From Klebsormidium nitens (lineage: Eukaryota; Plantae; Klebsormidiophyceae), in assembly GCA_000708835.1 (NCBI GenBank), contig DF237053.1, positions 124,001 through 188,000 of the forward strand: a stretch of 64,000 bases of DNA, in the 5' to 3' direction. The notes under the pieces are model-generated. The model saw only the letters and a program-made list of their open reading frames with translations. It did not search any database and had not been told where the DNA came from. The translations under genes were made by a program, and so were the position numbers. This document shows positions 5,799-44,900 of the stretch, in pieces. Each line of letters starts with the position of its first letter. Within the stretch, counting starts at the first letter, position 1.

Positions 5799-6376
5799 GA
5801 CGTTTCAATGGGAAAGACCTGATGTAAAGAGAGCCGTTTGGAACATGCTAGGCATAGACTCTGCGCCTGCCAATGGCTACGATTACAACATCAGACAGCT
5901 CAGCTCTGCCGCTCTCGTCCAGAACAGGAGTCTGGTCAAAAGCAGGTTTGACGAACTGTGCGCTAATATTCTGCCGCCGTCTGATCAATGATATGGCCAC
6001 GTGCCCCGGGGCCAACTAATAGTTTGCCCTTATGCACTTTACGTGTGTTGAAGCATAGAGCGGCTTGACCCAATCTGAGACGTTACTGTGCGGCAATCTT
6101 AACCTCGCGACGTCTGATTGCAGCCCACGGCGTTGTCAATGCTTTTGCTTCTTGTCAAGCTCGGCTTGCAGGTCGGAAGGTCGGGCCTAAATATGTGCAC
6201 TAAGCTTAAATCAATCATGTAGCAGCTTGAACCAAAACACCGTGCAGAGTCATCATGGCCTGCCAGAGAATTATAACGGACACTGGCCTGCGGGGGAAAA
6301 GTGTAACGGCCGCCCCTACATATGCCCGGCCTGAGTCCTACATAGACTGGACCACCCAATCTATGGGCATCTTTTG

Positions 6377-6421
6377 CACATGGCGCCTGCGCACATGGCG
6401 CCTGCGCACATGGCGCCTGCG
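6377..6421. repeat. 15-bp tandem repeat x3 (gcacatggcgcctgc)
   Basis: Three exact copies read directly from the sequence. Confidence 0.95.
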
Positions 6422-6523
6422 CGCATGACGCGTCGATCAACCAAGAAAGCCTGCCCGCGCCGTGGACACGTGATCCATCCTGCGAAAAATACATGGCTCT
6501 TGAGTTTACGCTTTCAAAACACT

Positions 6524-6600
6524 TAGTATCTATACGGCCATAACGTTGTGGCATGATATGGCATATCATGCCACAACGTTATGGCCGTACATAGATACTA
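6524..6600. repeat. Near-perfect palindrome: 28-bp perfect arms, 1-nt loop, extended about 9 bp past a 2-nt bulge
   Basis: tacggccataacgttgtggcatgatatg (6533-6560), g, catatcatgccacaacgttatggccgta (6562-6589); outer arms tagtatcta / tagatacta. Confidence 0.95.
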
Positions 6601-7003
6601 TGATGATGATTGGAAGGCGCGTACACGTCGCTCGGACTGAGTGAATGGTTCGCGAAGTGCAATGCTCATATTCGTGCACGTATGTATCGTGCCACTGGCT
6701 TGAAGGTTGCACCTTGTTGATTGATTGATTCAATAGAAAGCTTGATTCTGCATAACCAACTATTGCGCGTGGGCCTCGATGACAATCTTCAATGTTGCTG
6801 ACATTTGAATCCTCATTACCTTGATCAATGACATGTCGAAGTCTCAGACCTTCCATGTTTAGTACCTCCTGAACGTAACCGACTAAATTACACCTCCAAT
6901 CACATTGTTTGTCACAATCCGTTCTACTCAACATACTTATGTGCTCTTTATCGTCAACCCACGATCACCAACCTCATCAACCTTACACCCCAAGCAATGA
7001 AGG

Positions 7004-10000
7004 TCACCGAGCTACAGACGCCTTTTTCCCATTCCTCCCAGATGCGGCCCGTTCCATAGATCGGCCTTCCTCCTCGCTTGGGAGATACTCCGGCAACGCG
7101 TCGAAAAGGAAGTCTAGGTCGCCCGGAAGGGACTGCTTGTTCTTGGTCGACCGGGCTCCAACGATCAGGGCCCCGCCCTCTTCCAAGGCCCACAGCTGAC
7201 ACATGGAGTTGGACGTCAGCACAAACGCGCCATGCTTCGGAAAAAGTGGTGTCAGTGCCGCCTCGCCTCTGGACAGCAAGCAGCACTTACAGATTGCTCT
7301 CTTAGTCAGTTTCAATACAGCCATCGAACATCTGTCTGACGACTTTGCAAGCAAAGTCCGGCGGGTAAGGAGAAGGGCGAACCTCTCCCATCATATAAAT
7401 TATTCAACGAATCTAGCGGTAAAAGGGTTGACACAACGACTAGCACCACTGATAATAATAATAAAAATTTTAGGCGAAGTGTTAGTCGATAACTATAATG
7501 TTAGTATTGGTGGGCAAGTTATCGAACAACAAACCGGAGAATATATGCATGTACAAAATCAATCAAAAATCAACGGGGTCAATCCCGTAACTAACGTGGC
7601 TTGCTTGCAGAACCCCTTAAATCTCAGCTCTTGCCGTGTCACGTTTGAGAATGGACAAAGGCTGGGCGTTCAGGCCCGCAATCTCTGTTTTGCATGTAAG
7701 AGGCAACACCTTGCAGCAAGGGTGGGACTATCAGAAACAGCAAAGACGTTTGTAGGAACAGCCGCACAAACATCGACAAGCAGTTGGCAAGATTCTCCTT
7801 AGAAGAAAGACGGGACTTCGAGAGTTTTCACGCTGAAGTCTTCAACGAGGACGGAAGCAGCGGACACAAGTACTTAAGATGGTACAAGAACCAGTCTCCG
7901 CAAGGCAACGATAGGAAAAGAATTATAACGGAAGCGACGAGACGGGCCAAATCCTGGAACCTAGCAGCTGAGGAAGACGGGATCGAGCGGGACATGAAGA
8001 ATCCTTACCTGATCGTGCGACACCTGGCTCACAATGACGGTCACGATGAGCGTCCCAAAGCCGGCGTAGACGAACGGCACTCCCGGATCATACTGCAAAA
8101 AGATGAGGCATGCTAAGATGGAAGGAATGATGGCTCGTGCCATATTCTTGTTTGAAACAAAAGTTGTCTGACGAAGCTAGTCTTGACCCTCATGTTCTCT
8201 GATTGCCGTCACGCAGCCAGCTCCTAGGATCCGGTTGCAATCTCATTTCGTGGACTACCATCAGGCTCCCACGCCGAAAACAGGATGAAAGAACCAGTCT
8301 TCGCGATTTGCATGCGCTCCAAGATACTTCACCATACCCTTTCTGCTCTGTACAGACGTTGCACGCAGATGCAAGCGGGCTTTCACCGAGGCTTGACATC
8401 GACAGACCCCCAAAACCATCTATTTCTGACGACTTGCAGCTATCAACCTTCCACTCCAACCATAAGGAGAAGACATTGCTCAGGTTCTTTGATTCGACAA
8501 ACGTTGCTGATGTTTCTCGGATCTAGACAAGGACAAAGACACTACGCAGACTGAAGGGCAAACCCGCCCACTTTTCTGCCGTACCTTGAGCTGCATTCCG
8601 GTCGCCCCGATAAGCTCTTCGATGACGATGTCCTTCCCGTCTACAGTGATGGGCTTGTTCGATCCCGGCCGTCGAACGCCGACAAAGTTGCCATCGGGGC
8701 CGTAGATAGCGACGGACAGAAAGTCACGTGCCACCAGAGAGCTGCATCGGGCGCAGAATCGTCAATCGGGGGCCACACAAAAAATTAGAACTGTGCTTAT
8801 TCTGACAACGTTGAAAAGTAACGAAGAGGTTTTTAAGAGGTTTTTTCGCACCTTTGTCATTCCAGATTATTCCTGACCGTATTTGCGTTTGTCTTCAATC
8901 ACTCAACCCTGCTTCGCAAGCGGATGCAACGCTATGGTTTTCAAAGACTGAGCAAAGCAGAGAATAGTCCCTAATCCATGGCGCAAACTCGTGGGCTTCC
9001 TTCGAAAACTACCAAAAGACCTCCCCTTTGCTCCGCTATGCAAAAGGGCTGAAAGACCGTGATAATTTACGAGGCACTGGGGCCAAGCGTCGCCGTCAGA
9101 TTGTCCCCCCTTCTCAAAAGTGGGAAGTCGTAATACTTACACGCCACGTGGCTCTTCCGCAGGCCCCGTCCTAAGGAACGTTCCGAAGAGCTTGCCCGTC
9201 TTGCCCTGCGGGAGCGGATAGGCCCTGTCAGAAGCTGCGCCGCACTTGGCAAAGCGATGGAGCTGACTGAGGCGCTTCGATATCACAAGCCGGCAAGGCG
9301 GCTATCAGTGTCCGGTTCTAACGGCGAGCTGGCACATAACTTCCTTAGAACGATTACCACAGAGCCTGCTTCACAGCACTCCGGACTCCTTAAGGGGAAG
9401 AAAATCGTCTACGAGGGGGTTCCAGAGCTCCAGTCAAGAGATTTTCAGCTCCATCCGAGCGAAACACATTGCGTCTAGCGAACATGGTGTCCAGAACACC
9501 TGCTCAAGTGGAGCTTGAGAAGAAGAGAGTCACGAAGCAAAAGCAGGGACCCGGACGAAACGCCTGCGTCAGTCTCACAACTTGAATCCGAAGCACATGG
9601 GAGTTCCGTCGCCATCTCCAGCACGTCGATGCGTCGCGCTTACTCCGCGACCCGAATTCCGAGGTTGCCACGCATCTTGATTGAAATATGACGTAAGCCG
9701 TAATCCAGTTACCAATCAATCATCCAGTACGGCCACCAGCAACTATTTTCGCAGCCACTTCATGATCCAGAGGGCACTGAAGAAAGGGTGAGGTGAGTGT
9801 GATTAAACATGTTACAAGAATGATGCAAACACCATGCTTACCACTCCGTCGTCAAGAATAGCCATCGGCAGCCGGAACGGAGCCCCCCCGTCGACGCGCG
9901 CTTGCAGGCTCGCGAGGTTCCAGTCCGTCTGGTACATGGTCACCCCGCCGTAGCGCAGCGGGTCGTTCACCTTGATCATCTTATGGTACACCTCGTTGTC

Positions 10001-25627: not shown

Positions 25628-28600
25628 ATGGGAGGCTTTTGGGCAGAGGCGGTTCGCCGCGACCCTGAACCCTCTGCGCCAGCCAAAGCCACAATGAGGA
25701 ACGAAACCCACAGCCAGATTAATGGGAACCCCGTTTCCGAGGATGGTAACAACCCGTCCGTGTCATCAGCGGTGGTTACGGCAGAAGCGGACAGCGGGCG
25801 AGCATCGGACACAGAGAAGAGTGGACCAATGTCTGAAGACGTTGGGGCTAGAGTGCATGTGAAGGGGAAGGATGGAGGGCATCTAATGACTCTAGTGGTG
25901 GACACAAACGCGATCATCACTGGAACTAGACTGGACAACATTGCGGAGAGCCTGGTAACCATTACCGAGGTGTTTGAGGAGATCCGGGACAAGCAGACGC
26001 GGCAGCTGCTGGCGAGGCTACCGTACGAGATCGAGACGAGGGAGCCGTCGGATGCAGCCCTGAAAGAAGGTAGGTGGTCGCATGAGACGATCCTGACAAA
26101 TGCTGGTGCAAACAATTGGTGGTGGTTTGTATTCGTTTAATGATGGTGCGTGAAGAAGTCGAGTTTGACATGATAGAGTAGGCCTCTATTTCTCAATTGG
26201 GTTGGGCAGCTTTTGATGCCATGCCATTCTTAGGTGTTCCACGACGTCAGGATGGTAAGACTCCAGGGTTTGTTTCTCGCTTAATAATCCTGAGCAGTAT
26301 TCATCGTGGGCAGTCTTCTCGGGTGCGATGAGGCCAAAATCAAGGCTTACCAGCTCATATTGCCATACCCCTAATTTCGATGGTCGCGTGATGTGGAATT
26401 TCTCTTTGGCCAATTCCTGCTCCTATTTTCCAACGCCATTTTTGACACCCCCATGGCAATATCTTTGTTTCTGCAGTGGTGCGCTTCGCCCGTGCGACTG
26501 GCGACCTCCACTCCCTCTCCCCCCCTGACATCAAGCTCATCGCTCTGACCTACACCCTCGAGGCCGAGCTCTACGGCACCGCTCACATTCGCCGTGAGCC
26601 CCCCCCAATCGCAGTGGCCAAAAAGTCTCAGGCCCGTATGAAGGACCCCCCCGGATGGGGAAAGGTCGCAAACCCGGCTGATTGGGCGGGGATTGACGAG
26701 GTGGGCGATGATGGGAAACGGCCCGGATCGAGCAGCGGTTTCGGAAAGGGGGGGTCGAGAATTTTTGGGGTGAAGCCTTTGGAGGGGGATAGTGTGAGTG
26801 TGGTAAGTTCGAGCGGGGCGGGGGAGGTTTTGAAAGGTGCGGCTGGGTTAGGGCTGGAGGAGGTATCAACCAGCTTGTCAAAAATCGGGTTGGAGGGAGG
26901 GTTAATGCCCAAAGAAGGTTCAGCGGGTCTGCCGGAGGTTAGCTTAGAGGAGCAAGGAGTGGGGACAGAGGAGCAGAAAGGGGAGTCGGTCTCAGAATCG
27001 AACATCGAAGAAGGTGTGAAGTCGGAAGGGAAGGGGGTTCCAAGTGGTTCAGAGGGCGCTGCGGCGTGGGGGGGCTTCATGGTGGCGCCACCTGTCGCAG
27101 TCCCGTTGGCCAGCAACTCCCTTCTCTCTACCAAGCCTGCAAATGACAGCAGCGCTCCTCAAGCCGTCGGAACCGCGAGCTTCGCAGAAGCGGCGCCTCA
27201 AAAGAACGCCCGCCAAAGCTTCAAACAAGGGGGGGGCAGAGGGGGGGGCCGAGGGAGAGGCCGAGGGAGGGGGAGAGGAGCAAAAATGGCGGCGCTCACA
27301 AAGCCGATTGTGGTGGATGGGGTTCATGCAGTGTTAGTGGAAGAGCAGGCGATCGAGCACGCAGAGGGGGGGGACGAGTGGGAGCGTAACGTGAGCCGTA
27401 GCACGCGGAGGAAACATCAACGGCGGGCCGAGAGGGCGGCGGGGCTCGAGACACCAGGGGGTGTGAATACAGGGGCCGCAAATATGGGGGCTGTAGAGGT
27501 TGGGGCGAACTCTGGGGACGGTCCCTCTGCTACTGCCGAGGGTCACGTAGAGACAGAAAGCAACGCTGAGACTCATGCAGAAAAAGGGGGAGAAGAGAAA
27601 GCGGAAATTGGGGCTGCAGTGGTGTCGAAAGGAGTGGGCTTGGTGGAGAACGATCAGAAAAGCGAAGCGGCGGCGGAAAGTGTGCGGCAGTCCGAGGGGC
27701 CGGCGAGCGCAGAGGGGCCGTCTGGTGCGGAAGCCGAATCGGGAGGCCAGTTTTCGGATGCAGAAGAAGACGAAGAAGCGAGCGGTGCCGAGGAAGACGA
27801 GCCGGAGGTAGAGTCTCCGGCCGCTGACGTCGACGACACCCCAGCTGACGTCAGCACGCGCGCAGAGCCAGAGGACAGTGGCGAGCCTTCGGGAGCAGCG
27901 GAGTATGAGTACGTTTACAGCGATCAGGAAAAGGCCCCGGAATCGATTCAGGTGGCTTTGCCCCAAGCTTCGCAGGCTGCTTCGGAAGTTGGGTCGGGCT
28001 GGGATGGGGCCTCCTCGGCCGCGGGGCCCGAACGGGAATCGGAGGTGGCGTGCATGACCTCAGACTTCGCGATGCAGAACGTGCTGCTGCAGATGGGGCT
28101 GCGGCTACTGTCGGTGGACGGGCTGGCCATCTCGCAGGTGCACCGGTGAGGATGTTTACGCTTTTTTTCCTTGTTCTTCTCACCCCCCTCGCTTCCACAT
28201 GTCTTTTTGGAAGCGTTCTTTATCAGTGCTCAGTCGTCTTCTCGAAGTGCAACAGCGGCCGCGGAGGGGCCATCTCGCAGGTGCATCGGTTAGGAGAAAG
28301 TTGTAAATAGTTTCGTTTTTCCTGACACTAAATGCCTGCTCAAAAGCCGGAATGTCGAGCAGGCATTTTGCCAATTACAACAGCAGCTGACAGCTTGGTC
28401 ATCTGGCAGGTGCACCGGCGAGCAGGCCGCCGCAAATTTCGATCTCCTATGCAGCCGTCTAAGCCCTTTTCTGGGCACAGAATGCCGTTTGCACGGCACT
28501 CGATTCCGCATGTCGTCTATTCTCGGTTTCATGCGCGTTATTGGAAGCTTGCCATCTAGCAGTGCTCGGTTTCCTTCAAGTGCTCAGGTGACGTGATTGA

Positions 28601-30645: not shown

Positions 30646-32207
30646 ACTTGTCTCCGCTTAAGCCTGTAATTCTGTCATGCACCCTAGCCCTGATAGCCGG
30701 TGAAAGGGTGCTACTACTTTGAATGAGCAGCATGCGGCACAGGGATAGGAGACGCTTGGAACCATAATGTCATGCGATTTTAGTGTTGAAATTATCCGTA
30801 CAACCAAATCATGCACCTAGTGACGTTTGACATTGGCTACGTACGTGACCTTATGGTCGCTCCCGTATCGAAATACTGCATGCTCCGGGATGGGCTGGTT
30901 TGAAGCAGACGTCAAGTCGAGCAAATTTGCACATGCTTGCGAATGCACTTAATGTACCTAAACATGGCATGTGTTCGTATGGGCTATATACGCCTCTTGA
31001 TTGAGTTGTGTGTTGGATCTATGTTAACGCGATTTGATCATCAAATCTTAAATTTCAATATGTGGATTGATTGCCTGGTACAGGAAGTTCATGAGTCTCA
31101 TCTACATGCTGGCCCTAGCTAGCTAAAGCAGCCGTTCTATATCTTGCAAATGATCGATGGCACATATGTTGTCAAAATTGTGCCCGCGGTGTTTGAAGAT
31201 GCCGAACCACAGACTGAAAAGAGTTTCTGGGCCGCATGCAGCCAGCGTTCCTTCTTGTCGTTGACGCCTTGTTGAGCGCAAAGAGTTGGCTCAGTGATGC
31301 ACAGCTTGAGAAAGAGAAACGAAATCTATTCTTTCGAGTCTGAGATACAGCTGTCCGAATTGACATGCCATCAAGAGCCATTTTTCGAAAAAGGAGGTAA
31401 CGTTTCTCTTACTTCGACAAGTCCAAATCGTTGCTTTTGGTCTGAAGAGCAAGGACACGAAGTTCAAAAGTGGGAAGGAACGTGTTGACCGTTTCCGAAC
31501 TGAAAGCCAAGGCATACGAATGGACGATTCTTATCCTAGCCGGAATCTACTGCAGAGGCATCTGTTCCTTCACTTCATAGACGGTTTTGAGACCCTCGAT
31601 GAGGATTTGATTGAAAGTACCTAATTCATGACAAGTTTCATGCTGGTTAGACACGTGTCAGTGCGGAAGTGCTTCTTTATTTCGAGTGGGACGTCCAGAG
31701 ACTCCAGACGGAGCTCCGGAGTCCGTCGGCACCTTCCATTCCGCGGCCGAGCCAGGAGCCTGCGCAGTGCGGAATGCGGATGCCTAGCCGCGGAAATCGA
31801 CGAACTCTACCTTCAGTACGTCATTATGGCTGACGCCATCGTTCAAGTGGTGTCATGCTTTCGTACTGAAAAGAGAAAGCGAGCTGCATGTGGCCGAAGT
31901 TGAACGAACTCCACAACGATGCGCCGTACTATCGAAAAGTCAAACTTTGAATGATTCACGCAAAAGGGTCGTCGTCTTCGAGTGCCACGTTCACATTGCA
32001 CAGCATCAGCAACACAGTCCAAAATGTACGGTCTAAATATTTAGAAATTTCAATCATGCAAGTCAATCATGTAACACGACCATGCATGAGTCATGACAAT
32101 TGTGGAATTGATGGCGAGTCTGCGACCCTCTGATGCCGACACGTCTCTTACCGATGCCTACGCGCCTGCCAGACGAGAATTTAGACAAGAGAATCAAACG
32201 CAGGATA

Positions 32208-32651
32208 GGTCTCGTTTTCATGTTGACAAAGGGCAAGGGAAAGCACCCGGGGGACGGGTAGGGTTGGTATGGGGGTTAGGTGTGTGTACGGTGCAGAGCG
32301 GGTGACATTTAGTCGGTTTAGGTTTTTAGGTTTGTTCGTGCCCCCGAGCACGATCCTTAGTCAACATGCGCTTAGTCAACATGGAATCGAGAAGTATAAA
32401 CGCAGGTCGACCTTCTGACCGCCGTTCAAGCAGTAGCCCACAAGCCGCAATTTGGATACTTCTCGATTTCATGTTGACTAAGAGCATGTTGACTAAGGAT
32501 AGTGCTCGGGGGAACCAGCAAAACTAAAAACCTAAACCTGGGAATGACGCGCTCCGCACCCGTACCCACCCTAACCCCCAAACAAACCCTAACTGTCCCC
32601 CGGGCACTTTCCTTAGTCAACATGGCCCTTAGTCAACATGAAATCGAGACC
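32208..32651. mobile_element. Foldback/MITE-like non-autonomous element with ~190-bp imperfect terminal inverted repeats, flanked by TA
   Basis: Arms 32208-32397 and 32456-32651 are reverse complements (GGTCTCG...CGAGACC), with a repeated ttagtcaacatg motif and a 58-nt spacer. TA lies at 32206-7 and 32652-3, consistent with a Tc1/mariner-type target duplication. Confidence 0.8.
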
Positions 32652-33627
32652 TATGCAAATTGGGCTGCAAATGTTGTTGTAGTGTCTCTGGAAAGTGGGG
32701 GGGTACAGGGGGGAATTGGTCAAACGACTCGGATAGAACATGGAGAGATTGGTCCCTCCGAGCACGACAAAAGGTCGAAGGCCCGCTTTTGCGTCTCTGA
32801 TAACTTCGTAGTACATTTCTCAAGCGCCAGCGCCCGTCAGACACCAGACGGCCATTCGTCAGCTGCAAAGCTTATCTTGTCACACGCCTGCCAAGAGGGA
32901 GCTTAAGCTGAGAGGGAAATATCGTCGAAGGTCTGCTGTACCTAGTCGCTCCGAGTAGATTCTCGATCCAGGATGGCAACCACCAGGTGAGCTCCTGTAG
33001 TTGTACCAACGGTTTCTGCTTCTTGTTCCGACTTCTTTTCCTTTCATACATGGATGAGTGCTGGACCAGTTCAGGGTAAGACCGCGTTCAGAGACCTGTT
33101 GAGACTCTCATTGCGAAAGTTAGTATATATCCGGGATCCAGGGCCTTAGAACCCAATTGCAGTTTGGCTTCTGCTCATACTGAGCAAAGCTGACCTTGTG
33201 GCAAGTTTTTCTCTGCTTGATGCTCATCGCAGGAGTGACCTTTTGTGGGGCAATTGGTTTCTTGGTTGCACTCACTTGACCCTCCAATATTGCTGTTTGC
33301 TAATGTCCTGCTTCAGTTAAGGAACACTCATGATCGAGGGTCTCAATGATTGCGCAAAACCGATATCATTCAGCCAGCCAAGTTCGCCTCGTCGCCTCTG
33401 CACTTGAAAGTATGTTGTGCTAATCAAACCTTGAGAATACTTGTACATGACACCTTAAGGTATTCTTCGTGTCCACCAACCAAGACTCCCCATCTAAATT
33501 ATGCCAGAAGGCCACAATTACTGTTCAAAGCCTGATGCTGAGGAACAAATCCTCGTACTAAACCCCACAAAATCTCTTTTGCATAATTCAGATCGTCCCT
33601 TCATTGACAAGGCCTTCGGCGCCCAAA

Positions 33628-36211
33628 ATGGACATCAAGGGGGACCATCTTTCCATCCAGGACATCATCGATGTCAGCCTCTTGGGCCGCCACGTGCCGC
33701 TCAGCCATGACGTGGACGACCACGTGGCAGCAGCCCACCAGCTGATTCTCGACCGTCTGAAGGCGGGTCAACCCATGTATGGGGTCAACACCAATTTCGG
33801 GGGGCTGGCAACCAAACAGCTCACGGCAAACGAAGCCTCTGCTCTTCAGGAGAACCTCATCTGGGGCCTCAAGAGCGGGGCGGGTCGCAAGCTGCCCCCC
33901 TATCTAGTTCGTGCAGCCATGCTCATCCGCGCAAACGCGCTGGCCAGGGGGGCTTCGGGCGCCCGCAGGATCCTCATCGAACGGTTGCTGGCGTTCCTGA
34001 ATGAGGGTGTGACACCTGTCGTACACGAGCTGGGCTCTATTGGCGCGAGCGGCGACCTTATTCCGCTGGCGGAAATTGTCGGCTGTGTCATTGGCCTCAG
34101 TAAGGCCTACCGGGTTGTGGACCAGAATGGGAGAGAGCTCGACGCCCTGGCAGCGCTTGCTGAGATGGGCCTTGAACCACTTAGGCTGGAGGTATGTGAC
34201 TTTCTCCAGTAATTCTCAGGTTGGCTGCAAAAGCAAGCCATCTCAATCCTACAGTAGCTCAAGTGTTTTGAAGTGCGTGCTGATCACGAGGTTTCGTTGC
34301 GGTTTCCGAGACTCTTGATTGAGATGAAGCTTTTCGGACAAGAGAACTTATCATCCAGAGTATCATTGTGAACTTTAGGCAGACCTGTCAAAGCTTCGAA
34401 GATTGTCAACAGTCTCTTTCTGATTTAACGTTGCTGTCCTCGAGGAAGCAGCTTCAATTTCAAATTTTTCAAGACATCAATTAGTGAAAGCTGCACCATC
34501 TTTTTCGCAGCGGAAAGAAGGCCTCGCGCTCGTGAACGGCACCTCCATGATGAACGGCATCGCGTGCCACGTCATCACCGACGCTCGCAAGCTGCTGCGC
34601 CTCTCGCTGTACTTGCACGCCTTCTACATCCAGGCGCTCGAGGGATCCCCCGAACCCTTCTCCGCGTTTCTGCACCAGTGCAAGCCGCATCCGGGGCAGG
34701 TTGAAGCTGCCAGACTCATGCGCGAGCTGCTAAAGGGCGGGAAGGTCCTTCCGAACGCCGAGCAAATGCTCGAATCGGATAAGGCGCTGATTCAAGACCG
34801 GTACTCTATTCGCTGCCTACCGCAGTACATGGGACCGATCCTGGATGCGTTCGCTCTCATTGAGAAGCAGGTATGGCGTTGCACGTAGTGAAGGTGCAAG
34901 GCGGTGAGGTTTGCTGGGTTGCCTCATTAGTGGCGTTGTGCTCTGGTCATAGTTGTTGGGTGGTGTTTGATGCTTCAATGCGCTTCATCTGAATAGCTTG
35001 CATTGGTCAGCGGCAGTCTCTTCGTGCAAAAGTAACTTTTGAGCATATTCCCACGTGTTCGCATTCTGAGCTGTCTTCCCATTTTTGTTGCTGTAAGGCC
35101 TCGAGCACTTTTTGTGTTCATCCTTTGTCTCCAGATTACAGAGATATTAAATAGGCCTTTGGCTCATATGCAGGTTGAGATGGAGGCGAACTGCGTGGAC
35201 GACAATCCGCTGGTGGACGTGTCCGCCGGAATGGTGCTAAACGGGGGCAACTTTCTGGGGCAGTACATCGGAACCGGAATGGACCTGTTACGATATCACG
35301 TCGCCTTACTTACGAAGCATCTTGACACACAGATTGCAATGCTAGTTACGCCCAGCATGAACAACGGGCTGCCTGCGTCGCTAGTTGGCACACGAGCTGA
35401 CGATACGGGAATCAAGCTCGGCTTGAAAGCATTGCAGATCTTCGCCAACTCTGTCCTACCCCGGTTGATGCACCTCGCTTCCCCGATAACGCACCTCTTC
35501 CCGACGCATGCGGAGGAGTATAATCAGAACATCAATTCGCAGGTTTGTCACTTATTGGCTGGCTCATATGAGCCCTCATTTCACCTTGATCGTGCAACAC
35601 GGGGGCTCGCAGGAGCATGCCTTGTAAAGAGATGGTATTTGCCTGCTCGATATAGATGGGAAGTGATGAGATTCGTGGCCACAAAACTCAGTAAGCAACT
35701 CAATAACGTCCGAGCACAATTGGATCTGATCGCAATGCATACTCTCAGACTGTTGTATTCTGAACCCCTCACCTTGCTCGTTTCCAACTGTGACTCGAAC
35801 TTTCAAGAAATATTGATCGCGCCTCTCTCATCCTTAGCTCGCAGCTCTGGCTCTGTGTCTAGAAGGCCGTGTTTCAATGATTATTCTGCAGGGTTCAACT
35901 CTGCCAACCTGGCAAGAGAGTCTGTTGGTCTTCTAAGAACCTACCTTTCGGCTGGGGTGATTTTTCCGATTCAGTCAATAGAGCTACGCGCTTTCGCTAG
36001 GGAGGGGCACTAACATGGCGAGGCATTTTTGTCGCCTGCGTGTCGCCCTCTGTATAACGCCTTTTACAAGGCATTTGGGCAGCCCAATCAAACGACGAAG
36101 CCGTTCGTCGAAAAGAATGGCGACCAGGATCTTGCAGACTTGATTTCGAGATTGGAGATTGACCTTGCCAGCGTGGACAGCAGGTTGTTAGACAGCGTCT
36201 GTGAAGGTTGA
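33628..36211 (+). CDS. PAL: MIO-dependent aromatic amino acid ammonia-lyase, cyanobacterial PAL-like; 4 exons; possibly a pseudogene
   Basis: Exons 33628-34191, 34511-34870, 35174-35542 and about 35891-36211. Motifs: MYGVNTNFGG, GSIGASGDL (MIO), KEGLALVNGT, QDRYSIRC, DDNPL, GGNFLGQY, THAEEYNQNINSQ. Colinear with Anabaena/Nostoc PAL as I recall it; no eukaryotic shielding domain. In-frame TAA at 36011-36013. The start codon is uncertain because an upstream acceptor exists at 33591. Confidence 0.9.
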
Positions 36212-36826
36212 AGTACAAAATTTGATTCAAACGCGTAAGATTACAACATAGGACATATACGACGGTACAGGCTTTCGTGCATGTAGCGAACAAGGAAGCC
36301 CATATATACATGTGTGCATGCACACGAGTCACCGTCCAGTGCGCTGTAGGCCGCCTGGGGCCACATTGCAGTAGACCTGACCCTCTTGTATTTAGTACAG
36401 GATCCAGATGTCAGAGCACCCCGCGAGCATGGCCATACGTTGTGGACTCGAGCTTGCTTCAATGAAACTAGATCATGCAACACGTGGCTGTGATCTCATT
36501 CAATCATGACCGAAGGTCAATATCTGGTCTTCGAAGTGTATAATTCATATATCTCAGCAGCCCGATCAGCATGGCCATCTTGTGAACCCGGGCTTGCTTC
36601 AATAAAGCTGGACTGCAACATGTAGCGGTCCCACGCAATTATGAAGGTCAATTTTTGGTCTTCGAGCTCATGCTCAACGATCAGTGTCCCGACATACCAA
36701 ATTTATAAGAGGCTTACTTCAAGCCGTCCTTCCGTAGCCTTTCGCTCAAATTGCTCTACAAGAGCGCAAGTTGTTAATATGTCTATCTAAACCATACCGC
36801 AAGGTGTTGAACACGCAAAAACACTG

Positions 36827-39800
36827 TCACCTTTTCGGTGCGTTTTGTGGGTTACTAGATTGGCTTCCCGCGCTGGCACCACTCCCGTGCCCACTCGCCT
36901 TTTCTTCGACAAAAGCCCCCAGCTTCTTCAACCCCGTTCCCACGTTCCCGGCAAACCGTTTCCCCATTGCAAGCGCCTTGTCAGCCGCCGTAGATTCGGG
37001 GGGGTGGTTTCCGCTTGCTCCTGCACCCCCCGTTTCCTTGCCATAAGGTCCATGCACTTGGTCATATGATACATAGCCGGGGGGAGGGGGCGGAGCCACG
37101 AGCCCGGGCCCCAGACCCCCCTGATTCGAAGCCGGAGGACTCGCATAAGGAGGTGGCTGGCTTTTATAAGCAGACGACGAGCTCCCATAAGGCTGGCTTT
37201 GATAAGCTGGCTGCGGACTTGCATAGGCCGGCGGGCTGGGGCCTTCGAAGCCTGGTCTAGGAGGAGGCGCGGCATAAGCGCTCTGAACTGGATAACCCAT
37301 CTGAACCGGGGGGCTATGACTCGGGGGGAAAGCGTATCCTGGAGGGGGGGCAGGTCGAACCATGTCCGCAATTGGGGGGGGAGGAGCGGTCTGCGGGTAA
37401 CCCTGGTTGTAACCCGGGGGGGCGGACTGAATCATTTGAGGCCTTTGCTGGGGGAAGAATAGGCGCCCGATGATTGTTTGGGGGGTGCTGTTTGGCCGGC
37501 CGTTTGGGGGGGGCCTGTTGCTTAGGAGGGGGGCGCGGCGGCAGCATTCCAGTAGGAGACTGAGGACGATCATAAACAGGCTGGCGATGACGTAGACTAG
37601 GAGCAGAGCTGCGCAGATGGCGGCGGCTCTCGGGAGGTAGTGACCTTTGACGGGGGACTCGCCCTGCAAAAAGCGAAGCTTATCGGGTTGACTTGCATGC
37701 TAAGCCTTTCGACCGTGCAGAGGGTTTTTGGAAGAGTTTCCTGCGCATTGAAGCATTTGCAATTTTCTGAGGCAGCATCCGGAGGACCTGAGACCTGACA
37801 AGCCGCCTACGACTTTTGAGGCAAGTGCACAACTATGCGCTGCGATACTCAAGGGGTTTGGCTGCGCCTCTGAAAATCGATATCTCAGAAGTTTCCCCAG
37901 CGGAAACGCTTCTTGTCCTTTCACAGGAGCAAGTAACACAACAAGTCGAAACAGGCATCAACAAGTACCGAACACAATACGACATGTCGGGAGCGTAGAC
38001 GGCTGCAATATTTCTGACACCCGGAGGCAACTCGATCACACAAAAGAATCTTTTTGTCCACGGGCATGTATTGCTCCTGAAACATAATCGAGGGGTGAAA
38101 GCAACAATCAGAGCTACCTGATTCACTAAGCAACAAAAGAGCACCCTGGAGACGAGATGAAACTCAAGAAAGATATAGTAAGCCAGAATAATAAGCTCCG
38201 ACAAAGACTTAAAACCCCAACCCAAAAAGATACCTGCTCCGCACCCCTACCCACCCTAACCACCAAACTAACCCTACCCGTCTCAGTGCAGTCAACTTCT
38301 TATTATCTCGGCGTATCATTCATTTAGTGAGTTCGATGGAGACGAGTACTTACGCAGTGGGCAGATGCAAAAGCTTGGAACCCAGCAATCGCCCAGGCAA
38401 ATCCTCCAATGAAGAAGAGAACGAAGAAGGCTACCCAGGGGTCGTTCCAGAACACGTGGCAGGCTCTGCAGAGGGGCAACGTCTCAGTACCAGAATATAC
38501 TTTTCCACAGCAACGAGACTAGCAGAATCATTGGTCTCGTACAAACGTCCTATGCCTATGGGGCTCAGCAAAAGATAGTCATCTCGGTCTGCAAGCAATT
38601 GTTGCGATGGTCGCAAGATCTTTGTGTCTCGAAGTTCAATACGTTGGATCAGGATCAGTCAGAGGACCACAGTCAACTGAAATTTTAAGGCCCCAGACAA
38701 TTTGAGCTTAGTGTCCCTGACCAAGTGTAAAGTCGACTGACTTTGAGATTGGCATAGCTGAGATTGATAAGAATTTGAGGCTCTTTGACACAAATCAAGG
38801 CATCAGGACCAGTTGCTACCATGTGCCTCAAGAACCTTGAAGCGCTCAGTAACTTGTGAAGCTGCTGAGATAAAGCCCCTGTGGAGTGGCTTGATTTGTT
38901 GCAGAAATTCGACAGATAATGTAAAGTGACAAGTAATCAAGCCTTCTACAGTAAATTGACATGACCGATTGTTTGAAGGGTGACAGCCTCCAAATCAATT
39001 TCAAAAGGCACCATAACCACCTCATTACAGAAGCTCCCAGCTAGGCCTCCCCTTCGTAAGCTTGTACTCGGTTCACCCACCTTGCCATAGGCCCTGCATC
39101 TGCTTCCACCCTTGCATCGTAGGGCCGGGAGAAGTACGTGTATATGTGGACTGCAAACCCGACGAAAAACAGGTTGATCGCCGCAGTGACGTAGAAGAAG
39201 GCGGGGACATATGTGTCGCAGTGGTTGTGGATGTTAAGCAGCCCCAGAACGATGAAGACGACCCCAGGGATTGCGTTCATTAGGACGGTGAACCCCAAGA
39301 ATAGAGGGGACGGCCTGGAAAAGGAAGAGGAGTTTTGCATTGGGGCGGGGGGGGGGGTATCAAGCACCGAATAGTTGCTCAGAAGTGTCACCCTTGAACC
39401 TCCGTTACTTCGAGCTAACCTCTGAGAACTGAGGAACCCCAGGAACATTGGAACCATGACACTTCTTGGGTTGCGCTCATGCTCCTTAAGCAGCACACGC
39501 CAAGAGAAGCAAACTTGAACGGGACAGTGTGGCGAGCATGTATGTTCCCCAACATTGAAGGAAAGTTTCTTGTCTCAGCTCCTTGCGATAGCTGCTATGA
39601 TCCTCAAGGGACATGCTTTGCAGAGTCAGTCCTTGCCAGCAGCTTATGATCCTCGAATGGAATATGCTTTGAACAACCAGTCCTGCCACCATCTTATGGT
39701 GCTAATATAGAACATGCTTTGCACAATCAGTCCTGCCACCACCTTATGGTGCTAATATAGAACATGCTTTGCACAATCAGTCCTGCCACCAGCTCATGAT

Positions 39801-40305: not shown

Positions 40306-41987
40306 GGCAGCGCCTCAGCCTCGATCAAGTAGAGTGGATGACTCGTGCGGTGTCAAGAGAGGACAAGCCTCTCGACCTCGATCCAAGACTGATAGTGGAG
40401 AAATCCCGCGAGTGACAAGATAGGATGAACTTGAAAGTGCGGGACGTTTTTTGAAACCCTAATTTGCCCTGTGGGCCCTCTGATGGACGCGTAGACGAGG
40501 TCAGCAACGGATTGACTGAATGAGGTCCTTATTCACTGCAGTAGAGGAGTAATTGTGTCAGCGCCACCTTCCGAAGCAGCGGATTCCATCAGGGTTCACT
40601 TTTGTCATGAGCACTGTCACTTCCCAAGCTACCCTTGTGTCCTACGGTTGGCAGGAAGATGCTTTGCAGAAAGCTGCTTGCTGCACATTCCTGCCATGCT
40701 AGACTTGTAGTGCCAGCAACACGGATCCAGCAACACTTGTCAACAGAACCATGCGGCAGCGCAATGCGCATGAGCGCCCTTCCCCACAGAGACTGCCACT
40801 TGAGTCCAGATTCCAGGCAGCTAGTCTTCCAATATCATTGTCGCAAACAGGTCAAAGAACGGAGTTGTAAAAGTGTTCACATGCTACTTTTACGCACCAG
40901 GTGCGTCAGCATTTTTGAGCCAATTTGACATCCCGGGCACTATGCTTTCCGCGGTGACGACCTACAACGTTGTGGTTAAGGGCTAGGTACGACAGGCCTA
41001 GGTGGTTTATGAGGGTCAGCTCGATCACGGGTTAAATCTTCCGAGCTGATATGGGTATACCAGTACTGAGCTTCGGCCTGGGGCTGGCCCGTGCTGTTGC
41101 TTCAACTTGCTTGTTCAGACCCCGGTTTGGTACCTAGTTGACTTGAGAAAAGGTTACGGTTTCGGTCATGTAGGAATGGCCAAGGCTGGCTGTTGTAGAT
41201 AGGTAGTTAGTCTCTGCCCGGTAGAGAAAAGGAGTAGCATGGATCGCTCGGTACTTTTGTAAGGTGTGTCGGGTGACGCCCTACCACACGCGCGACGACG
41301 GGATCGTCGGATCAATCGGGCGGCTGAGAGCAATGGCCTAGGTAACACTCGGCCGGTAACACTTTTACAACTCCGTTCTATGTACTACTTGCATCATTGT
41401 CGTCTCCCCGAGTCCAGGCATGGCATTAGCCTGGTGTATTCTGGGCACCAAAAAAGTGGCCGTTTCCCAAGCATCGTTTTCATCTTGCCGTCAAAACTTC
41501 TCAGCTTTGAGCATCGGACGATTCAGAAGCCCTCCCCAGCTTCCACCTTGGCCACGTAATAAAAATTGCCGCCAATTGACGATCCCCAATTGCTCCAAGC
41601 TGGACAATCATGGACTTCTTCAGGGCCAGATTCAAGCAGACAGAGAGGAGGGAAACGCATTCGCGAGCGCTTTGAATTCAGCTAGCTGCGCCTCTGCATG
41701 CAGATGCTTCTTTAAAGCTGACGCCCGGGGGTGCCATAGCGCTGAGGAGCAAAGGAACGGGTTGGTTCTATTGCTGAGAGCACTGGCAGTGGCGGAGATT
41801 TTGGGAGGAAAAAGTAGTTGCTTGAAGCAGAGAGAGCCCCTTTGTTGCTTTGTTCAAGCAGGCGGCGTGGATTCAAGAAGAAAGCGGCCTCTGGCTGCGG
41901 ATGCCGGATGGTGTGGGAAGCGGGGGGGTGTAAGATGAGGTGACAGGGGTTTGGCTGGCCGGCAGCCTCGAGGGGAGGAGGGGAGGA

Positions 41988-44900
41988 ATGGCGGTGACCG
42001 CTGTCCAGGCTGCGGCTGGCACATTACCATCGAGCACCGTGAGATTCGACGAGTGCTGCTCGCTCCTCAGCAGTCTGCCGGGGCCACATTTGCAAGGGAG
42101 CTTCACTGCAGCCATCGGATCTGGTTTGGCGCCATCTGAGGGTCCAGATTCCAGATGGAGGCTAAGGTGGCGGGAGCGGATCGGGGGGTACCTGGAGAGA
42201 AGACCCGTGCGGAGCCCTGTTTCGTGCTCCGCAGATCGGCAATGGGGGGCAGCAGTGGGCGAGAGCTTGTATCAATCGAGCCTGATTCTACCCAATGCCG
42301 GCACGCTCACTTTGGCAGTACCTCAGGTAGAGTGCCTGGAGGTCACGGGGGGCCACGCTTTAGAAGGCCGGGTACGCATCAGCGGGGCCAAGAACTCGGC
42401 TCTTGCAGTTCTTGCTGGCGCTCTCTGCTGCGAAGAACCGGTCGTGCTTCGCATGGTCCCAGATCTGCACGACATCAAGCGGATGAAGCAGGTGCTAGAA
42501 TCTGTAGGAGCGACGGTCAAGCGCGGTCACGACGGCTCCGATAGTTGCGTCCTGGTGGACGCATCAGAACTGACGTCCGTGGAGCCGTGTCCGGACGTGG
42601 TCCGGAAACTGAGAGCGAGCTTCTTTGTGCTGGGGCCATTGCTGGCGAGGATGGGAAAGGCGGTTGTGCCGCTCCCGGGGGGGTGCAACATCGGCGCGAG
42701 GCCGATTGACTTGCACACGAATGGGTTGAGGGCGCTGGGGGCGGAAGTCGAGCGGAAGTGAGCATTTTCCCCTGAAAAGGTGCTGTGTGTCTAGTCAGAG
42801 GCATTGTCACCAATTGCGCACAATTTGAATGCGTGGCAGGTGAAAATTTGAAGTCTTGTTTGTTCAGCCAGATCTAGGAGGATTCACGCTGAAACGTCCA
42901 GAGCAGTACAAGCGATGAAGAGAGCAGGACAAGCAAAATGAACAATTGGAAATGCAGAATTCTCTCTCATCCAAGGTGCGACCTTGCTTCCGCTGACTCG
43001 AGTGTACAAATGCAGGCATGGGAAGATTTACGCGTACGCCAAGAACGGGCGGCGATTGGTGGGAGGCCATGTGCATATGGACTTTCCCAGCGTGGGCGCC
43101 ACAGAGACGATCATCATGGGGGCCGTTTTAGCAGACGGGGATACAACCATCACAAACTGCGCGCAGGTAGGAATGTAATCTGCTCAAGCAATGTCATGAG
43201 GATCTCGAGTAAATTCAGGTGGTTGCAATCCCAGCAGGTTCGCGAGGCTTGTGCAGTAAGCCTGGGAAAACGACCAGCAGTCATACATTGCATCTGACAA
43301 AGCGCCCCTTGTCTGCTTGTTCAACGGTCTGGACAAGCTACCCTTCAGCCGCACCCTCTGCGGAACTGAAAGAGCAGCGGTTTTGTTCAAAGAGGAGAAC
43401 TAGATGCAGAGTGAAACGAAGGGAGGGCTTAACTCAACCCTCAACTCTCAAGTATTAAGGGGAAGTGTGAGGCGGAAGGGGTCTCAGATTCCGCTGACCT
43501 CTGGAGCGGCTCATTATAAAGGGACCAATTATATGGAAGAGATACGTCCAGTGGTCTGCCTCCTTATGGTAGGAATCAGCATCAGTGGGACCAAGCAGGC
43601 TGTTCTTTTCAATTTAGTCATACCTGCCCGAATCTATCACGCTGTCTTCCACTGTCTGCTGTAGTCACCCAAGTTTTAGAGCGGAGTGCCAAAGACAGTT
43701 GTCTTCCCATCGGTCCCTTCTCAGATACTTCCTCTTCAACTTTCTACCTTAATGACCCATGTTTTTGTTGTGACGCCCTCACGCACTTTAGCTGACTGCA
43801 CCCCCTGCTCGATAATTCGTCATCCATACGCAGAAGACCAGGTCCTAAGCTTCCTCTCCGTCATATCTTTGCTCATTGTGGTGTTGGCCAGGGTCACCCA
43901 GTAGCTTATGCTTCCCCCCATCTCCTACACCCATAGCTTATCCCCAGTGCCCCATCTCCTATGCCAGGAGCCCGAGGTCCGGGACCTCGCCGACTTCCTC
44001 AACGCGTGCGGCGCTCGCATCCGCTTCGCCTCCAACAACACCATCTGCATACAAGGCGTGAAACGCCTGCACTCCGCCGAGTTCACCGTCATTCCGGACC
44101 GAATCGAGGCGGGCACTTTCCTCACCGCGGCTGCGATCACGCGCTCGACGATCTCGATGTCCCCCGTCTATCCCACGCACCTTGCGGCGGTCATCAGTAA
44201 ACTGCAGGCGATCGGGTGCCGCATCGGGCCCGACATGGAGCTCGGACCGCATAGTGTCAAGGTGAGTGTTCTGTTTCTGCTCTTTTTCCCCTCACTTCAT
44301 TCCTAAACTGGAAGCGACCTTTTGCACTAACGGAGAGCTTAGTGTTATGCCCTGGTTTTGCAACGTCTCCAAGCCGCTTGTTCATATCCAATGTCAGCTG
44401 GAGTCTACTGACGCCAGTGTTCGACGTAACTTTAGAAAGTCAGTTGAAAGGGACCGTAACGTGAACACCTCTGGAAATGAGATTTTTGTAGAGCCTTGTT
44501 GCAGAGCCTGAGCTTGGGAGCTGACGGATTGCAAGGATATGTGGTACTTTTTTTGGGTGGTGCTGACATCAGACTACCGAAGCTTCCCCAACAACCTTGT
44601 CTTGCTTTTGCATTAGATCGAGCCTGCCGGTGGCGAACCGCCTCACAAGTGGAGCTTGATTCCCTCTCGACCTTATATCCAACTGGTCAAATATGTTTCT
44701 AATCTATCAAGCAGCTCATTAGCCAGCTGTTCAACTGAATTTCCCCCCCCTCGTTTTGCCAGATTGAGTGCCCCCCCAACCTGCGGAGCTCAGAGATCAA
44801 CACGCTGCCCTTCCCCGGCTTCCCCACCGACATGCAGCCCCAATTAATGGCCCTACTAACTACATGTTCTGGGACCAGTCATATCACCGAAAATGTGTTT

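Follow-up and report, generated by a model that had tools for sequence, protein, structure and literature searches.

The window analysed here, 64,000 nucleotides of eukaryotic DNA from Klebsormidium nitens with a GC content of 0.51, carries on its forward strand an intron-bearing gene for an aromatic amino acid lyase of the family that uses a 4-methylideneimidazole-5-one (MIO) electrophile. Its product is the database protein 'Aromatic amino acid lyase [Klebsormidium nitens]' (P0001, 479 amino acids, 100% identical). In the literature the gene is named kfl00104_0290 and described as the 'promising PAL candidate' (PAL, phenylalanine ammonia-lyase) of streptophyte algae, and De Vries et al. placed it among bacterial PALs. 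On balance we favour a joint reading in which the glycine at the substrate-selectivity switch, Gly80, is real and belongs to a distinct clade of bacterial type, the alga acquired the gene, and the K. nitens copy is damaged. We found no assay of this protein, or of any other member of the clade with Gly at the switch, in the literature.

The transcript evidence consists of assembled contigs from four different studies or runs that cover 33589-36300, a range over which they match the window with 0 substitutions and 0 indels. All three intron joints are seen in all four runs. Together with the GT..AG borders and the contrast in GC content between exons (0.55-0.61) and introns (0.42-0.47), these joints indicate that the introns are real, and on the same grounds a bacterial-style reading of the locus as plain open reading frames (ORFs) was rejected. 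Against PF00221 (cut-off 27.3), the bit scores of the three family-homologous exons are 179, 131 and 92, and the exons cover profile positions 1-414 of 466; the translation of the first, from ATG 33628 to 34191, includes ...PMYGVNTNFGGLATKQLTANEASALQENLIWGLKSG.... Scans for tRNAs and against Rfam gave zero matches in the window. The gene is built as follows down to its third intron, with the PAL of Anabaena variabilis abbreviated AvPAL and tyrosine ammonia-lyase abbreviated TAL.

32958-32986 (+): upstream (5') exon, 3' end; donor CAG/GTGAGC at 32986/32987, joined to 33592
33592-34191 (+): exon with the first family-homologous ATG (33628), residues 1-188, holding the Tyr loop, the switch and the ASG/MIO triad; PF00221 at 1.6e-52; splice joints in four runs
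33778-33801 (+): Tyr-loop motif Y51-G-V-N-T-N56-F-G, aligned to 2nyn/3czo/5ltm; Tyr51 = AvPAL Y78; Asn56 (codon 33793-33795) = AvPAL G83
33865-33867 (+): switch codon GGC, Gly80, followed by Leu81; equivalent to AvPAL F107, PcPAL F137 and RsTAL H89; unchanged in four transcript studies
34045-34053 (+): Ala140-Ser141-Gly142, precursor of the MIO electrophile, from the translation
34192-34510 (+): intron 1, 319 nt, GT..AG, phase 0; joint in four runs; position common to the orthologue on contig L001
34511-34870 (+): exon, residues 189-308 (KEGLALVNGTS ... QDRYSIRC ...), from Pfam, translation and transcripts
34871-35173 (+): intron 2, 303 nt, GT..AG, phase 0; position common to the L001 orthologue
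35174-35542 (+): exon, residues 309-431 (DDNPL ... GLKALQIFANS ... HAEEYNQNINSQ), from Pfam, translation and transcripts
35543-35891 (+): intron 3, 349 nt, GT..AG; transcript joint; not in the L001 orthologue

The upstream exon was located from the loose contig ends of all four runs, which read ...GATTCTCGATCCAGGATGGCAACCAC 5' of 33589, a string that is unique in the window and lies at 32958-32983. Further upstream, a nested foldback repeat occupies 32200-32662. Its units are ~250 nt long and alternate in orientation, its inverted arms measure 83 nt (92%) and 43 nt (86%), and a core CATGTTGAC[T/A]AAGG / CCTTAGTCAACATG recurs in it. The annotated start codon of P0001 (ATG 32220, MLTKGKGK...) lies within one of the foldback arms, which makes the annotated N-terminal 13 residues doubtful.

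The glycine switch and the clade that carries it

The sequence-only reading held that a glycine codon aligns without gaps to the residue that selects between Phe and Tyr, that the usual T-G-F-G of the loop with the catalytic Tyr reads T-N-F-G, and that the catalytic Tyr and the ASG, NGT, QDRYS and DNP motifs are intact. The translation and a phmmer alignment against the Protein Data Bank (PDB) bear this out. Exon 1 matches AvPAL (2nyn, 3czo and 5ltm) at E ~1e-42 and gap-free across this stretch, with NLIWGLKSG over NLVWFLKTG and YGVNTNFGG over YGVTSGFGG, and a count along the chains pairs Tyr51 with Y78, Asn56 with G83, Gly80 with F107 and Leu81 with L108. A sequencing error at the Gly codon is excluded, because the transcript contigs of the four studies match the window exactly. 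The orthologue, on the 208-kb metagenome contig L001, is intron-bearing and 67% identical to the K. nitens lyase, with which it has the positions of introns 1 and 2 in common and matching exon borders. It reads YGINTNFGG and ENLIWGHKCG, keeping the loop Asn (NTNF) and the switch Gly (as G-H). Outside the lyase gene, no synteny was found between the window and L001.

The remaining catalytic equipment is that of the family, which we represent by 200 near-full-length short-type MIO proteins (alignment rows from P0003-P0228). ASG is present in 200/200 of them, and the catalytic loop Tyr, Ala-Ser-Gly and N260, Y351, R354, N384, F400, E484, N487 and Q488 (PcPAL numbering) are all found in K. nitens, in the L001 orthologue and in 20/20 bacterial members of the clade described below.

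The switch pair is that of neither the PALs, the TALs nor the histidine ammonia-lyases. The PAL zymophore of Weise et al. (2017) has Phe-Leu at motif positions 6 and 7 (AvPAL F107 and L108) and at least 18 of 19 pocket residues; the K. nitens protein fails it with Gly instead of Phe at position 6, and at position 7 it has Leu where L001 has His. TALs have His at the switch, as RsTAL His89, or a Y-H or F-H pair; the K. nitens pair is G-L, and the G-H of L001 and three bacterial members places His at the second switch position only. Nor is the pair the Ser-His of histidine ammonia-lyases (HALs), and the corresponding model TIGR01225 (hutH) gives 323 against a cut-off of 539. No NCBIfam family reaches its cut-off. 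For the PAL equivalog TIGR01226 (cut-off 519 bits), the K. nitens protein scores 343 and the bacterial clade member P0125 scores 349; the AvPAL-like control P0092 is also below it, at 413, showing that this model does not cover short bacterial PALs. Scores against the aminomutase models are far under their cut-offs and also lower than those of the PAL and HAL models.

Among the 200 proteins the switch pairs are Y-H (51), F-L (51), S-H (38), G-L (20) and G-H (3). Gly thus occupies the switch in 23/200, and the loop Asn occurs in 20 of these 23 and in 3 of the 177 others. The Gly sequences form one group, with an approximate likelihood-ratio support (SH-aLRT) of 99 in a first tree and ultrafast bootstrap (UFBoot)/SH-aLRT values of 100/100 in a careful one, and a 100/100 branch divides them from the F-L, Y-H and S-H sequences. 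The algal pair of K. nitens and L001 (100/100) is nested in a nine-row subgroup (98/95) beside the bacterial P0125, P0024 and P0122. The AvPAL motif classes (T-S-G-F loop, F-L switch) occur only outside the Gly group, AvPAL itself being no row in the tree. By sequence, then, Gly80, Asn56 and a changed position 416 (AvPAL numbering) are the signature of a distinct, otherwise bacterial clade. We found no characterised member of it (no PDB entry, no NCBIfam model at cut-off, no paper). A scan of GTDB genomes gave one named Gly-switch locus among the 80 matches listed. The proposal of a new class rather than an ordinary PAL therefore survives in part: the protein is not of the AvPAL/NpPAL type, and a well-supported separate clade conserves Gly and Asn jointly, but the signature is no private novelty of the alga.

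Also within the Gly-switch group lies P0129, a protein of 601 amino acids with a D-H switch and an NTCF loop from the arbuscular-mycorrhizal fungus Gigaspora rosea, which adds a second eukaryotic lineage to this clade of bacterial type. In the short cyanobacterial-type family Y-H, which Weise et al. read as TAL-like, equals F-L in frequency (51 each of 200). Position 83 of the loop is Cys or Leu in the S-H sequences, and their position 416 is Thr or Val. Most switch classes of the short family appear to be uncharacterised.

In AvPAL numbering the only clade-specific residues are G83N, F107G and those at three peripheral sites, and the remaining catalytic and hydrophobic pocket residues, including L104, L108, L171, L219 and I423, are all PAL-like. 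By corrected mutual information (MIp), the pairs 83-416, 107-416 and 83-107 take ranks 1-3 of 83,028 column pairs, and the triad falls into these states:

PAL/TAL-like classes: 107 = F/Y/H, 83 = G, 416 = M
Bacterial Gly clade: 107 = G, 83 = N, 416 = F
The two algae: 107 = G, 83 = N, 416 = L
S-H classes: 107 = S, 83 = C/L, 416 = T/V, in two motif groups (TTCF, TTLF) that lie apart in the tree

An independent-contrast test of the 83/107 coupling gave a median p of 0.5 on 4 pairs and is underpowered. The summed side-chain volume of the triad is 411 Å3 in PALs, 363 Å3 in the bacterial clade and 340 Å3 in the algae. The sequence-only reading had deduced an enlarged pocket. The smaller volume, 48-71 Å3 below that of PALs, agrees with this, as does PcPAL, in which a smaller residue at this position opened the pocket to bulky para-extended substrates (PMC6055856). 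As a description it is too simple, because positions 83, 107 and 416 co-vary as a triad (F/G/M against G/N/F in the order 107, 83, 416), which suggests a far pocket wall remodelled with partial compensation rather than simply opened.

Lesions at the 3' end of the K. nitens gene

The sequence-only reading had spoken of a full-length ORF in need of repair. The gene is not simply broken, since three GT..AG introns split the ORF, but two real lesions do lie at its 3' end: a frame shift after the splicing of intron 3, and an in-frame TAA.

35892-35936 (+): out-of-frame tail of the spliced mRNA, reading GSTLPTWQESLLVF, with stop TAA 35934-35936; identical to the end of P0001
35891-36010 (+): family-homologous frame GFNSANLARES...IELRAFAREGH, 40 codons, aligned to P0002 and AvPAL; read only with intron 3 retained
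36011-36013 (+): in-frame TAA at a conserved Tyr (orthologue GEGH-Y-DGR, AvPAL KTGH-Y-DAR), present in the spanning transcript contigs (X17 record 5, X13 record 2)
36014-36211 (+): remnant of the last 65 codons (…LSPACRPLYNAFYKAFGQ…), still open and not translated any more, ending at the family's usual stop 36209-36211; ORF 36029-36211

Splicing of the 349-nt intron 3 sets the downstream exon one base out of frame, and the spliced mRNA encodes NINSQ-GSTLPTWQESLLVF-stop, that is, 14 out-of-frame codons past NINSQ, as in P0001. The products thus lack the last 106 (spliced) or 65 (intron-retaining) C-terminal residues of the family. A complete MIO core, including the C-terminal helices past ...NQNINSQG, is found in L001 and in the bacterial members and is missing in K. 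nitens; the L001 orthologue has an intact C-terminus and no intron 3, and is collinear across its site. No stop interrupts the 65 codons past the TAA, which share 57% identity with L001, and this suggests a recent lesion.

Two ways around the lesions were considered and rejected. A different donor or acceptor that preserves the frame over intron 3 was sought and does not exist; the 349-nt splice is the one seen in the reads. At TAA 36011-13 a micro-intron or recoding finds no GT..AG and no joint in the reads, and we see no known read-through context there.

Intron 3 has 0, 6 and 9 stops in its three frames, the 0 being in the frame of exon 3, and a stop-free intron 3 arises in 23/5000 shuffles (p ~0.005). 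It is retained at about one-third to one-half of transcript depth in two of the four runs (unspliced against spliced depth, 417.6 vs 388.8 in X3 and 9.5 vs 18.7 in X8), compared with only 1-3% for introns 1 and 2. No second copy of intron 3 was found in the comparison of the window with L001.

The K. nitens sequence has also evolved faster than its algal sister, with 49-57 unique substitutions against 23-33 in L001 in relative-rate tests (p 0.0002-0.04). It changes a near-invariant G (LQICG to FA) and a near-invariant Q (HAEQ to HAEE), beside I460 and E484 (PcPAL numbering). Selection depleted every premature stop codon in a deep mutational scan of AvPAL (bioRxiv 10.1101/2021.06.06.447205). 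Because every product is truncated at its C terminus and the lineage is accelerated, the K. nitens gene is more likely transcribed but decaying or inactive than the source of a working PAL.

Proposed function and comparison with known systems

The bacterial members of the clade mostly lie among genes for secondary metabolism, with 6/9 contexts being polyketide synthase (PKS), non-ribosomal peptide synthetase (NRPS) or fatty-acid-type settings. The contexts include the following.

L018 (Polyangiaceae metagenome-assembled genome): KAS-III, AMP-ligase::MIO fusion, hydratase/dehydrogenase, thiolase
P0122: KAS-III and an ORF of >2,436 amino acids
P0125: a ketosynthase follows
P0200: KAS-III, ligase, acyl carrier protein (ACP), MIO, trans-AT PKS
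P0188: ligase, pterin-dependent aromatic hydroxylase, methyltransferase, NRPS-PKS
P0019: trans-AT PKS cassette
P0013: a Trp/Tyr-family permease adjoins
P0004: an enoate-reductase-like flavoenzyme adjoins

In L018 the AMP-binding (CoA ligase) and MIO domains share one ORF of 1,085 amino acids (6333-9587); we know of no described ligase-lyase fusion of this kind. The ligase fusion and the β-oxidation set need an acrylate, which points to an acrylate as the product of the L018 lyase. Members of the clade are most likely ammonia-lyases that feed aryl-acrylates into secondary metabolism, with Phe, Tyr, Trp or substituted rings as putative substrates. Among the neighbouring algal genes in the window, no pathway partner genes were found.

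In the mechanism we propose, the ASG triad of the clade enzymes would form the MIO, Tyr51 (AvPAL Y78) would take the β-proton, and the conserved Arg/Asn/Gln/Glu set would bind the carboxylate and amine. The released aryl-acrylic acid would be activated by the neighbouring ligases to the CoA or ACP thioester and serve as a starter unit or be chain-shortened. With an aryl pocket that is PAL-like save for the remodelled far wall, the substrates are probably Phe- or Tyr-like rings, possibly substituted or larger. The gene probably passed from such a bacterium to an ancestor of Klebsormidium-type algae and gained its introns there. In K. nitens, the spliced mRNA would then yield a protein frameshifted after NINSQ, and the intron-retaining mRNA one that stops at the TAA.

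Several observations weigh against parts of this account. Four studies show good transcription of the gene, and its exons 1-3 are without a lesion, as suits a gene still in use, and the stop-free intron 3 hints at selection on the intron-retaining form as coding sequence. A protein without the last 65 residues may be inactive. All reads are assembled contigs, probably from one laboratory strain, and the lesions may be strain-specific. Both the word lyase and the most likely substrates are drawn from gene context and conserved residues, and active-site residues cannot separate lyases from aminomutases (PMC5651878). Positions 83, 107 and 416 may be in spatial contact, and the probable direction of transfer holds only with a root outside the Gly clade, which we assume.

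A bolder version of the favoured reading, which we advance tentatively, makes the G107/N83/F416 clade a new substrate class of MIO lyase, acting on Tyr/Trp-like or ring-substituted amino acids and not on Phe, and supplying unusual aryl-acrylate starters to bacterial assembly lines. On that view, streptophyte algae would have as their sole 'bacterial-type PAL' a member of this class that came by horizontal transfer and is now decaying. If this were true, the gene could no longer serve to argue that the phenylpropanoid entry step arose ahead of land plants.

It is possible, if rather doubtful, that the clade simply deaminates L-Phe to cinnamate like AvPAL, the G/N/F triad being another build of the same pocket. 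The L018 layout fits a route from Phe through cinnamoyl-CoA to benzoyl-CoA of the enterocin type, all other hydrophobic pocket residues are PAL-like, a Phe is gained at 416 where one is lost at 107, and De Vries et al. grouped the gene with bacterial PALs. However, at key position 6 of the PAL zymophore the switch does not conform, the Tyr loop gains a polar Asn, the two algae have Leu and not Phe at 416, the Trp/Tyr permease beside P0013 points away from Phe, and the 100/100 branch sets the clade apart from the F-L sequences.

We consider it unlikely that the K. nitens protein is itself a working enzyme of new specificity, with a Gly-enlarged pocket in which a bulkier or different aromatic amino acid (for example Trp, substituted Phe or Tyr, or DOPA) is deaminated. 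The orthologue and the whole clade conserve Gly and Asn, the triad volume is reduced as given above, each of the four studies has transcript contigs over the gene, and the P0188 cluster has a hydroxylase and a methyltransferase and P0013 a Trp/Tyr permease. PcPAL F137V and F137A take 4-methoxy-, naphthyl-, styryl- and biphenyl-alanines, which the wild type does not, and Arabidopsis PAL3 (below) is a precedent. Yet both mRNA isoforms of K. nitens code for proteins without the last 65-106 residues, the lineage is accelerated, with two near-invariant residues changed beside pocket and catalytic positions, the co-varying Met416-to-Phe and Gly83-to-Asn changes speak for compensation over a gaping pocket, and there are no algal partner genes nearby.

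Still less credible is a 2,3-aminomutase that, like AdmH and CmdF, supplies NRPS/PKS lines with β-aryl-amino acids instead of setting the acrylate free. MIO mutases occur in NRPS/PKS clusters, and several members of the clade adjoin such megasynthases. Small or polar switch residues (Cys/Ser) have also been reported for mutases (bioRxiv 10.1101/2021.06.06.447205). Against this, the β-oxidation set and ligase fusion of L018 need an acrylate and not a β-amino acid, as does the enoate-reductase neighbour of P0004, and the NCBIfam mutase models fare worse than those for PAL and HAL. It is very improbable that the gene is intact and that mistakes in the reference assembly produced the 3' lesions: one lesion does lie in a short G run (35891-93), a typical miscall site, but the transcripts of four studies agree with the window at every base across both lesions and show the 349-nt splice.

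kfl00104_0290 has repeatedly been cited as a sign that the phenylpropanoid entry step predates land plants. Under the favoured reading this use is weakened in three ways: the protein fails at the residue by which Phe selectivity is defined, its clade is another than that of the AvPAL/NpPAL type, one tied to bacterial secondary-metabolite clusters, and the reference strain can make only a C-terminally truncated protein. As evidence that algae have a plant-like PAL, the gene is weak. The clade itself offers a natural, conserved alternative pocket, the Gly/Asn/Phe triad, at positions that PAL engineers mutate, and catalysts that act on bulky or substituted aryl amino acids may be found in it.

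Elsewhere in the window, ORF pieces at 41940-44303 (+) match EPSP synthase (PF00275, 5e-28 and 4e-19), a nearness that may be coincidental. A PIN_6 ribonuclease domain (PF17146) is split over two ORFs at 25628-28146 (+), probably one intron-bearing gene. Directly 3' of the lyase gene, 36830-37669 (-) is a proline-rich ORF of 280 amino acids with PPPP/YxxP repeats and one hydrophobic segment, and has no Pfam match.

The best solved relatives of the clade are AvPAL and NpPAL (2nyn, 3czo, 5ltm, 2nyf), which exon 1 matches at the E value given above and P0125 at E 1e-176 with ~50% identity. They have in common the short architecture without the plant shielding domain, the MIO triad, the catalytic Tyr, the carboxylate- and amine-binding residues and the pocket residues. 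The clade differs in F107 to Gly, G83 to Asn and M416 to Phe or Leu, and the K. nitens copy also in being without the C-terminal 65-106 residues.

The enterocin-type route to benzoyl-CoA uses the PAL EncP with a CoA ligase, a hydratase and a thiolase. L018 resembles it in that a lyase, a CoA ligase, an enoyl-CoA hydratase/3-hydroxyacyl-CoA dehydrogenase, a thiolase and KAS-III lie next to one another. It differs in that ligase and lyase are one protein and the lyase has a Gly switch; L018 is known from its genes alone, and the comparison is one of gene layout.

PcPAL F137V and F137A (PMC6055856, PMC9226071) show the same position made small, with bulky para-extended arylalanines accepted. Each of these plant PAL variants carries one substitution made in the laboratory and lacks the Asn83 and Phe416 changes, and a natural Gly is not among the PcPAL F137 variants that we found in the literature. 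Arabidopsis PAL3 is an ammonia-lyase for 3-carboxy-tyrosine in which a non-canonical switch and two pocket changes accompany the loss of PAL and TAL activity and the gain of a new substrate (bioRxiv 10.64898/2026.09.15.751672). It differs from the K. nitens protein in being a long, plant-type PAL with Tyr at the switch and other co-changes (I to V, E to S), and in that its activity was shown by experiment whereas the present case is made from sequence; the two are alike in that a long-accepted 'PAL' carries a non-canonical switch residue.

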